NCBI RefSeq assembly: GCF_006345805.1
Contig: NW_021824824.1
Coordinates: 1 to 17,519 of the forward strand
DNA from: Octopus sinensis
Taxonomy: Eukaryota
Direction: 5' to 3'
DNA length: 17,519 nucleotides
The notes below the pieces were generated by a model that did not search any database, had not been told where the DNA came from, and was given only the letters and a program-made list of their open reading frames with translations. The position numbers and the translations under genes are program-made. Each line of letters opens with the position of its first letter. The stretch's first letter is position 1. Below are positions 1,271 to 3,912 of this stretch, one piece after another.

Positions 1271-3912
1271 ATGCAGGCTTTGAATCAGCAGAATGATAAC
1301 ATAGTAAAGGATATTATCGGAGAAAATTGTCAACTATTATTTTCAGATTTTATAGAACAGTAAAAAAACTAAAAATATATCTAATAGGTTCATTAATTCC
1401 GAGGGAAAAGAAATTTACTTAATCGCTGCCCAAAAACTATTAAATAGTGAAAGTTCAACTCTTAACGTTGACTACTCGGATATCGACTCTTGGAACCATC
1501 ACTTGGCTGTTACCATTACAGAGGAGTACTACAGGTATACTTTTTTTCTAATATAGTCTAGAATATACCCATTTTTATGTGGAAGTGTGGGAAATGTACT
1601 TTCCAAGAAAGGGAAAATTCCTTCGAAAAAGGAATTTTTTGTTTCTTTTGATTTTGTGCCAACTTTTGTAAAAATCAGGCAATTAAGCAGTGGAAAAATT
1701 GGCTCTTTGATTAAAATAACAGGTCAGGTAGTCAGGACACATCCAGTCCATCCAGAATTGGTCAAAGGAGCCTTCATTTGTTTTGAATGCCAGACTCTTA
1801 TAAGAAATGTAGAACAACAATTCAAATACTCACAAGTAGTATTATTATATAAACACATAGCCCACAATTTGTCGCAATCCTGTTTGTAATAATCGAACGC
1901 GTTTCATACTTGATGTTGATAAGTCACACTTCATTGATTTTCAAAAGGTCCGAATTCAAGAAACTCAGTCGGAACTTCCTCGTGGGTCAATCCCTCGTAG
2001 TCTGGAAGTGATCCTTCGTGGAGACTGTGTGGAACTAGCCCAGGCAGGGGACCGTTGTGATTTTATTGGAACACTTATTGTTGTGCCAGACGTGGCTGTA
2101 TTGTCTCTACCGGGAGCTAAAGCTGAAACATCGACTCGAATGACTGGAAATAGAGCATATGAAGTTGAAGGGGTACGTGGGCTGAAGGCTTTGGGAGTAC
2201 GAGATCTTAATTACAGACTTGCTTTTTTGGCTTCGTCAGTAAAGACGAGGAATAGAGTCGCTCTGGAAGACTGCAGTGAGGAAATAATCAGAGAAATGTA
2301 CAACGACAGAGATTGTATTCAAACCTCTGTTCTACTAGCCTTTTCCCATCAATTCACGGTTGAATTGTTTTGTTTGAATGAGAAGGAAACGACGAAGTGA
2401 AGCGTGGAATTTTACTTATGCTTTTTGGTGAGTTGGTAAGCAAACCTCTGAAGGAATAAGTCTCCGTGGAGATGTGAACGTCTGTGTAGTGGGAGATCCC
2501 AGTACTGCAAAAAGCCAGCTCTCAAGTAATGAATTGTATATATTTTATAGGCATGTGGAGGAATTGAGTACACGGGCTATTTATACAAGCGGAAAATCGA
2601 CATCAGCTGCTGGACTCACAGCTGCAGTTGTCCGCGATGAAGATTCAGGGGAACTAGTAATCGAGGCAGGAGCCCTAATGCTAGCTGACGGAGTAGACAG
2701 TCCTTTTAATTGAGTAGGGAGTGTGTTGTATTGATGAATTTGACAAGATTGAAACTCACGATCAAGTGGCGATTCATGAGGCAATGGAACAACAGACTAT
2801 TTCGATTGCCAAGGCAGGTGTTAAAGCAACATTAAATGCACGGACTTGTATTCTCGCAGCGGCCAATCCACTTGGAGGACATTATGATCGTACTAAATCA
2901 CTCAAACGTAACGTAAATATGTCTGCCCCTATTATGTCACGTTTTGATCTGTTTTTTGTACTCGTGGATGAATATAATGAAGTGATTGGGTTCCTTAATT
3001 ATTTTAGATAACAGACTATGCCATTGCTAGTAAAATAGTCCAACTTCATGCACTTAATTTGAGTATTTTTGATCGGAAATATGCATTGGAAGATATAAGA
3101 GATATTGCTTTCTCACGTCAATTCAACCCCAAAATTCCACCAGAATCGCAAGATTATATTGTCCAGCAATATAAGCTTTTGAGACAGAGAGATGCTGTTG
3201 GTGGAAATACTTCTTGGCGTGTTACAGTCCGTCAGTTAGAGAGTATAATTCGCTTAAGTGAAGCATGGCACGAATGTTTCTTCGCGATGAGGTTCTATCA
3301 CTTTTTTTTATTTCTTAGGTTGAGCCTCGTCATATTAAAGAAGCATGCCGACTTATAAGCAAGTCTATAATCAGAGTGGACCACCCTGATATCCTCTTTC
3401 ATGAAGGTCCCGATGAACTTTTTATCCCCGAGGACATTCCAATGACTCCTCAAACTCCTATGAATGTTCAATCCCCAGGTTACATTATTTCTTGAGTGTA
3501 AGACCGGACTTCTGTCCCATCAACAACTGGAGGCTATCGGACTATTTCTATTACATATGAGGAATATAAACAAATTACTAATGCACTTGTCACTCATATT
3601 CGGCATGTAGATGAACTGGCAGAGTTGTCTCAGGAGATGAGTTTGGGGATTAGGCGATCTGAGTTGATTGCTTGGTACCTTGGAGAAATTATTGGGGACA
3701 TTGATACGAAAGAGGAACTTGCTGAACGGAAAATCATGTTGCAAAGACTTATTGAAAGGCTTTTCAATCTGTTATTTTCTGAATTTGATATTCTGTTTAG
3801 GATCATATTCTTATTCAGTTGACACATTCTGATATGAACGAAGATGGAGGTGTTGCCACTGATGATCACCATCATTGTCGTGCATCCTAATTACAAACGC
3901 ACTGATTCTTGA
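1271..3912 (+). CDS. MCM6: DNA replication licensing factor MCM6; 11 exons; several single-base frameshifts in the 3' part
   Basis: Exons about 1271-1359, 1388-1534, 1562-1835, 1861-2358, 2386-2525, 2551-2692, 2718-2981, 3008-3291, 3319-3478, 3504-3770, 3801-3912. Motifs: ITEEYYRIYPFLC; [14 protein letters not shown]; Zn finger CFEC...CRNPVC; [27 protein letters not shown]; Walker [10 protein letters not shown]; Walker B CCIDEFDK; arginine finger IMSRFDLFF; [14 protein letters not shown]; C-terminal [10 protein letters not shown]...IIVVHPNY. These match recalled animal MCM6. Frame breaks at about 2314, 2430, 2520, 3265, 3771 and 3868. Confidence 0.95.
1360..3800 (+). other. Ten ultra-short spliceosomal introns of MCM6 (25-30 nt)
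   Basis: GT...AG segments whose removal restores the conserved protein: 1360-1387 (28 nt), 1535-1561 (27), 1836-1860 (25), 2359-2385 (27), 2526-2550 (25), 2693-2717 (25), 2982-3007 (26), 3292-3318 (27), 3479-3503 (25), 3771-3800 (30). Confidence 0.88.

Follow-up and report, generated by a model that had tools for sequence, protein, structure and literature searches.

Tiny introns are known from Paramecium (20-35 nucleotides, nt), Stentor (15-16 nt) and the nucleomorph of Bigelowiella (18-21 nt). The closest described systems are those of dicyemids and myxobolid myxozoans. In Dicyema, 16 introns with a length of 26.2 ± 1.9 nt were found at conserved positions in genes with long branches (Aruga et al. 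2007; PMC2222250), and Ogino et al. (2010; Gene 449:70) reportedly widened the survey to 40 genes. A genome-wide median intron length of 27 nt was subsequently reported (Zverkov et al. 2019; PMC6543705). The genome of D. japonicum, the assembly of which merges Illumina contigs with PacBio RS II Falcon contigs, has 36.7% GC, 48.9% repeats and many long interspersed nuclear elements (LINEs) (Lu et al. 2019; PMC6736024). Among 51 metazoan genomes, such introns were encountered only in myxobolids and D. japonicum, and the splice logos of D. japonicum and of myxozoans are reduced to “GTa” and “AG”, with weak A’s as a likely branch site, which lies farther from the AG in longer introns (Hadjez et al. 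2026; PMC13644364). In the same study, the branch-point-interacting region of U2 and the U2AF proteins were conserved in myxozoans (the small nuclear RNA (snRNA) and U2AF analyses are given for myxozoans only), and the recognition of such introns is stated to be still unknown (PMC13644364). Here we describe an MCM6 gene interrupted by ten introns of this kind in a 17,519-nt stretch of DNA (contig NW_021824824.1, assembly GCF_006345805.1, positions 1 to 17,519; hereafter the window). We consider it likely that the gene belongs to a rapidly evolving bilaterian, with a dicyemid (Dicyema) as the most probable candidate, in which ancestral GT-AG introns have been squeezed to about 26 nt and have lost their extended consensus. 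An initial annotation of the window had put these introns forward as under-described biology, a claim that does not hold, because the length, the positional conservation and the GTa/AG logos of dicyemid and myxobolid introns are already published. The intron type is already known, and the window is a good example of it but no new phenomenon.

The MCM6 gene lies on the forward strand and extends from ATG to TGA at positions 1271..3912, with 10 introns and 11 exons that were delimited by spliced alignment (1271-1359, 1388-1534, 1562-1835, 1861-2358, 2386-2525, 2551-2692, 2718-2981, 3008-3291, 3319-3478, 3503-3770 and 3801-3912). Its conceptual translation matched human MCM6 (PDB 22vt_6) with E = 1e-287, and the scores of the MCM6 chains decreased in the order human, Xenopus, Drosophila, C. 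elegans and yeast. The protein belongs to MCM6 rather than to MCM2-5 or MCM7 (600-959 bits for MCM6 chains, about 305 bits or less for the other MCM subunits), and its AAA+ motifs, including SRFDL, are intact as read directly from the corrected protein. The motif RTHPVHPEL, which had been called animal-type in the initial annotation, is common to the MCM6 of the window, human, Xenopus, Drosophila and C. elegans, yeast having RTSEVRPEL; the comparison covered the four animal structures and yeast. In a large protein collection, the full-length query found no match above 61% identity; its closest matches were animal MCM6 proteins (58-61% identity), and nearly all of the top thirty came from molluscs, annelids, brachiopods and nemerteans.

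After correction of the frame breaks described below with N, the protein retained 234 of the 263 columns (89%) that do not vary among 118 animal MCM6 proteins, the replacements at the remaining invariant columns were mostly conservative, and no nonsense substitution was present in 793 codons. Because of this retention, the conservative character of the replacements and the lack of nonsense substitutions, the gene appears to be still under constraint. The protein also differs from all 118 animal homologues in the absence of about 20 linker residues before the AAA+ domain (window 2245-2312), a stretch that includes three otherwise invariant residues (M, E, W), and in one additional Ser in …NLCSTSLFP….

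The introns were located with a protein-to-genome dynamic-programming aligner that places GT..AG introns, accepts non-canonical introns at a higher cost and permits frameshifts, using the MCM6 proteins of Lottia, Owenia, a mammal and Nematostella as references. The spliced alignment against animal MCM6 recovered ten GT..AG introns between positions 1360 and 3800, and the coordinates, the donors and the acceptors listed for ten introns in the initial annotation were all reproduced exactly. Their lengths are, in order, 28, 27, 25, 27, 25, 25, 26, 27, 24 and 30 nt (mean 26.4, standard deviation 1.8), i.e., 24-30 nt, so that the upper bound of the range first proposed (25-30 nt) stands and the lower bound moves down by one. 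All ten begin with GT and end with AG, as U2-type introns do, and excision of the ten segments restores the MCM6 frame (for introns 5 and 10 only together with an adjacent one-base correction). A U12-type identity (donor /RTATCCTT, branch site TCCTTAAC) was rejected, as none of the ten donors, read directly, matches, the closest being GTATAC.

For comparison, the exon structures of MCM6 in Lottia (L003) and Nematostella (L004) were derived with the same aligner, and the introns were mapped on one protein alignment; the MCM6 gene of a metagenome animal (L001; ENA ERZ25072152, contig ctg52053, positions 151-6048) was used as a control for intron positions. The window gene has 10 introns, that of Lottia 15 and that of Nematostella 20. 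Lottia and/or Nematostella have an intron in the same column and the same phase for eight of the ten. Intron 1 (1360-1387, 28 nt, aca/GTAAAA...TAG/gtt) and intron 2 (1535-1561, 27 nt, cag/GTATAC...TAG/aat), both in phase 2 and, like all introns of the gene, on the forward strand, have their position and phase in common with Lottia, Nematostella and L001, as does intron 4 in phase 1 (2359-2385, 27 nt, acg/GTTGAA...AAG/gaa). Three phase-0 introns are common to Lottia and Nematostella: intron 3 (1836-1860, 25 nt, caa/GTAGTA...TAG/ccc), intron 7 (2982-3007, 26 nt, gaa/GTGATT...TAG/ata) and intron 8 (3292-3318, 27 nt, gag/GTTCTA...TAG/gtt). Intron 6 (2693-2717, 25 nt, gga/GTAGAC...TAG/gga), also in phase 0, is common to Nematostella and L001. 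The last intron, intron 10 (3771-3800, 30 nt, tct/GTTATT...TAG/gat), is in phase 0 if the base missing next to it is the third of a Leu codon, and Lottia, Nematostella and L001 likewise have a phase-0 intron in its column. Intron 5 (2526-2550, 25 nt, caa/GTAATG...TAG/gca) is in phase 2 if the missing base ends exon 5, in which case it matches an L001 intron in residue (383) and phase (2); the Lottia intron lies 4 nt downstream. Intron 9 (3479-3502, 24 nt, cag/GTTACA...AAG/acc; phase 1) falls in a variable, unconserved linker that also holds phase-1 introns of Lottia and Nematostella, the alignment there being unreliable. It was recovered with two of the four references, and no other canonical intron would bypass the in-frame stop codons TGA (3493) and TAA (3499). 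Because position and phase agree with those of ordinary introns in other animals, the ten introns are best regarded as shrunken ancestral animal introns, neither insertions nor artefacts.

An alternative for intron 4, an in-frame intron of 24 nt with a GAG acceptor at 2382, was disfavoured by homology. Introns 5 and 10 adjoin one-base frame breaks, and their boundaries are uncertain by one base. Non-canonical boundaries that would avoid the frameshift in these two introns (TA..AG, GT..TA, TT..AG) were rejected in favour of GT..AG together with a one-base deletion, because four other breaks lie well inside exons and because the corrected phases are the conserved intron phases.

The metagenome assembly contains the MCM6 of another animal (L001/L002) on high-coverage contigs of about 200 kb. 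The introns of L001 are ordinary (48-1470 nt, donors GTRAGT-like by eye), and six of their positions are in common with the window gene. Ordinary animal U2-type introns, as represented by MCM6 of Lottia, Nematostella and L001, thus have the same positions, phases and GT-AG ends as the window introns, and differ in length (48-1470 nt in ordinary orthologues versus 24-30 nt) and in the sequences that flank the invariant dinucleotides.

None of the ten window donors has G at +5, and the acceptors comprise eight TAG and two AAG with no CAG, as had been claimed at the outset. In Lottia and Nematostella MCM6, +5G was present in 28 of 35 introns (80%, versus 0% in the window; Fisher p = 6e-6), a CAG acceptor in 18 of 35 (51% versus 0%; Fisher p = 0.003) and -1G in 26 of 35 (74%, versus 4/10 or 40%). 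The mean match to CAG/GTAAGT was 4.6/9 in the window and 6.5/9 in Lottia and Nematostella (Mann-Whitney p = 5e-5). Extended complementarity to U1 and U6 (CAG/GTRAGT, +5G), which is typical of U2-type introns without strictly defining them, was accordingly lacking in the window. Intron interiors consist of 0.31 A, 0.09 C, 0.11 G and 0.50 T (80% A+T), exons of 0.31 A, 0.19 C, 0.22 G and 0.29 T (59% A+T). Given the interior composition, 0/10 for +5G (p = 0.32) and 0/10 for CAG (p = 0.39) are what is expected with no preference at all; the two positions are therefore simply uninformative in the window introns. Compared with the GTa/AG logos of dicyemids, the small sample of the window has A at +3 in five and T in four of the ten donors, and a T at -3 in eight of the ten acceptors, i.e., TAG is somewhat preferred (a mild preference, p = 0.05). 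The initial conclusion, namely that the tiny introns are real and their splice consensus is degenerate, is supported.

An A occurs at positions 16-17 from the 5' end in 5-6 of the ten introns and at position 9 from the 3' end in seven of them; this weak A cluster, seen in ten introns only, may be the branch site. Hairpins joining the splice sites were rejected for these introns (mean z of -0.54 against shuffles, no intron below -2.1). Retention of any of the eight introns of known phase would lead to a stop codon inside the intron or at most 27 nt after it. A depletion of lengths divisible by three (3n), as in Paramecium, was not seen among the ten introns, five of which are 3n; the four of these whose phase is known all hold in-frame stops, which for AT-rich sequence is not significant.

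The proposal that such introns are recognised largely by their length and AT content was upheld in part. The true introns are AT-richer (interior AT 0.67-0.92; GT..AG decoys of 24-30 nt within exons have a mean of 0.54), but the two properties do not separate them from exonic decoys: an AT threshold of 0.65, which keeps all ten introns, is also passed by 11 of these decoys that are purely exonic (e.g., 1329-1355 in exon 1, with an AT of 0.83). Length plus AT content was rejected as a sufficient rule, and since the 11 decoys pass, further information must be used in the choice of introns. What is left of the signal consists of GT, (T/A)AG, an AT-rich and T-rich interior and a weak A cluster. 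We envisage that ancestral major-type introns were squeezed into a narrow range of lengths around 26 nt while the extended splice-site consensus was lost, and that an otherwise conventional spliceosome recognises the window introns across the intron (intron definition). Minimal pairing with U1 and U6 may be offset by the AT-rich island and by a short, constant distance between GT, branch A and AG, and any intron left unspliced would give an early stop codon.

The canonical U1 5' end is ACUUACCUG and the canonical U6 box is ACAGAGA. It could be argued that in a spliceosome of dicyemid type one of these has changed, or that the choice of 5' splice sites has become independent of U1, and that the introns follow a different rather than a merely weaker code; they would then be defined mainly by a length ruler together with GT, branch A and AG, under a changed 5' splice-site reading head. 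Positions +4 to +6 of the donors carry no detectable information and the donors match the consensus complementary to U1 at close to the background level, which would fit such a change, as would the statement that the recognition of such introns is still unknown (PMC13644364). An Rfam scan of the window found no U1, U6 or other RNA family, hence no snRNA gene that could give positive evidence; GT and AG are invariant, and in the myxozoans that have this type of intron, both U2AF and the part of U2 that interacts with the branch point are conserved (PMC13644364). We consider both the altered spliceosome and the definition of introns mainly by such a ruler quite unlikely. To our knowledge, the other lineages with tiny introns (ciliates, nucleomorphs) keep canonical U1/U6 cores, which also counts against an altered spliceosome. 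If true, a reading head changed in this way would set the source organism apart from all other animals in the mechanism of splicing.

The coding sequence contains six single-base frame breaks that are not explained by introns and that were absent from the initial annotation, all given here on the forward strand. One base is missing at 2311..2313 (…AGA GA_ TTG…), at 2430..2432 (GGT G_A GTT, where a longer G run restores a Gly found in all 118 homologues), at 2524..2525 at the boundary of exon 5 and intron 5 (where a longer A run gives AA/G, i.e., an invariant Lys, and phase 2), at 3263..3265 (GC_ ATG) and at 3769..3771 at the boundary of exon 10 and intron 10 (CT_/GTTATT). One base is extra at 3864..3870 (about 3867), after which the conserved C-terminus continues in the next frame. 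Five of the six breaks are thus one-base deletions, each of which disappears when a short run next to it is made longer. Most likely, the six breaks are consensus indel errors in an assembly derived from long reads; the merging of Illumina and PacBio RS II contigs in the D. japonicum assembly would account for such indels.

The breaks might instead be real, in which case the locus would be an unprocessed MCM6 pseudogene, the introns of which may have drifted after inactivation, making the consensus look poorer than it was. The number of single-base indels that disrupt the frame (six in 2.4 kb of coding sequence) and surroundings dense in transposable elements would be in line with this explanation. 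Against it stand the zero nonsense substitutions and the 89% of invariant columns kept with mostly conservative replacements, the intact GT and AG in all ten introns, and the two deletion sites at which extension of the run yields the invariant Gly and Lys, with a conserved intron phase. In addition, the most likely source assembly includes PacBio RS II Falcon contigs, and other open reading frames (ORFs) of the window show similar run-associated frame breaks. A pseudogene is therefore unlikely, and indel errors in the assembly consensus are the preferred explanation of the breaks.

To place the host lineage, a neighbor-joining (NJ) tree with 200 bootstraps was computed from the window MCM6 and 24 reference animals, none of them a dicyemid and with anthozoans as the only Cnidaria. 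The window protein fell inside Bilateria in 200 of the 200 bootstraps and with Cnidaria in none, its branch having about double the length seen in the 24 reference animals. Its seven smallest distances were to spiralians and its three largest to the three cnidarians. At diagnostic columns, it shows the bilaterian state in six of nine, the cnidarian state in none of nine and the spiralian state in two of three. The phylogeny suggested in the initial annotation as a test of taxon identity thus resolves Bilateria but not the phylum. The window has a GC content of about 35% (by eye, from a 500-nt profile) and consists mostly of transposable-element debris. Because of the bilaterian placement, the proximity to spiralians, the matching intron length, the repeat-rich surroundings and the GC content, a dicyemid is the probable source, and of the initial suggestion, the animal host (here on a long branch) and the dicyemid as candidate are supported by the tree, the diagnostic states and the intron length.

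A source among the myxobolids, i.e., parasitic cnidarians such as Henneguya, Myxobolus or Thelohanellus, would also bring introns of this kind, since they are described as having reduced splice logos and median intron lengths of 22-27 nt (PMC13644364), and the assembly of H. salminicola is long-read based. The window protein was never sister to cnidarians in the NJ bootstraps, the three cnidarians were the most distant references, and cnidarian diagnostic states were lacking (0/9, versus 6/9 bilaterian), with anthozoans as the only cnidarian references throughout; the GC content and the abundance of transposable-element debris in the window also speak against a myxobolid. We regard this source as very improbable and retain a dicyemid as the preferred one.

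Several observations weigh against the interpretation of the locus as a dicyemid MCM6 gene with squeezed ancestral introns. The removal of the introns from the mRNA is deduced from the genomic sequence, and the six frame breaks could mark a pseudogene. GT and AG combined with length and AT content leave the 11 exonic decoys, and the branch-point A signal, based on ten introns, would not survive correction for multiple testing. Within Bilateria, the bootstraps were divided between Spiralia/Protostomia (97 of 200) and Deuterostomia (84 of 200). A query with the weakly conserved C-terminal part found no protein of the same species in the large protein collection, the only match being P0121 with 40% identity, the contigs of which are L001 and L002.

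Two further candidate tiny introns, both in phase 0 and on the forward strand, are located outside MCM6. The first, at 9306..9331 (26 nt, GTACTG...TAG), joins frames that fit and is spanned at its junction by an Integrase_H2C2 match; at the second, at 9452..9477 (26 nt, GTAAAA...TAG), the frames also fit, and support is weaker, the junction lying at the end of the Integrase_H2C2 match. Both belong to a small gene remnant at 9085-9750 (forward strand), which consists of Integrase_H2C2 (E = 5e-8) and a C-terminal piece without the catalytic core. Neither of the two 26-nt candidates has +5G, and the frame of the remnant is broken by one base near 9262, within a T6 run.

Other elements surround the MCM6 gene. 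Directly downstream, a non-LTR retrotransposon (LINE) occupies 3994-6500 on the reverse strand (reverse transcriptase RVT_1, E = 2e-21; endonuclease Exo_endo_phos_2) and is split into ORF pieces by several frame breaks. Nested insertions split a Tc1/mariner-like transposase gene on the forward strand (14220-14770, 15521-15643 and 17414-17519), which has an N-terminal HTH_23 and ends in …DDNFIFQQDGASCHTSRST at the edge of the window. One insertion is a reverse transcriptase (RT) fragment at 14885-15522 (reverse strand); the second, an element of 1770 bp, has terminal inverted repeats of 16 nt that match perfectly (CAGTGGTTCTCAAACT; 15644-15659 and 17398-17413). Three diverged copies in ORF pieces, at 441-755 (reverse strand), 11795-13002 (forward strand) and 15746-17200 (reverse strand), resemble hAT transposases by eye (…HTEVRWLS…, …FPTTYLCEQGFS…); a Pfam search of these pieces gave no match at E < 0.01, and the hAT label is tentative. 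In the copy at 11795-13002, a 30-nt GT..AG segment (12421-12450) is read through in frame and is not callable as an intron. Two imperfect direct copies, spaced 218-242 nt apart, are located at 10455-10654 and 10674-10881; they consist of blocks with 94-98% identity, between which small indels distinguish one copy from the other.

The introns of ciliates and nucleomorphs resemble those of the window in their narrow, minimal length, their AT-richness, their GT...AG ends with TAG and the premature stops that follow retention. Unlike them, the window gene encodes an animal-type MCM6 in the standard genetic code, its introns occupy animal positions, and 3n lengths are not depleted (5/10). Myxobolid introns are alike in being shorter than 30 nt, in their reduced 5' and 3' motifs and in the weak A’s near the 3' end; they differ in their cnidarian host, as opposed to the bilaterian protein of the window, and in medians (22-27 nt) that are partly shorter. 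The likeness to dicyemid introns extends to length (26.4 ± 1.8 nt in the window versus the published 26.2 ± 1.9 nt and median of 27 nt), GT-AG ends, conserved ancestral positions, GT(a)/AG logos, weak A’s, long-branch proteins and a repeat-rich genome; no difference from them was found in the window, the host of which would be a member of the Dicyemida. Single-base indels in the assembly break reading frames, and gene models from this source need frameshift-tolerant methods. Anchored by homology, the MCM6 locus lends itself to use as a minigene substrate or in teaching. A length of about 26 nt is close to the physical lower limit for spliceosomal introns, and the locus presents ten ancestral ones in a single, highly conserved gene, with long, consensus-rich counterparts in other animals.

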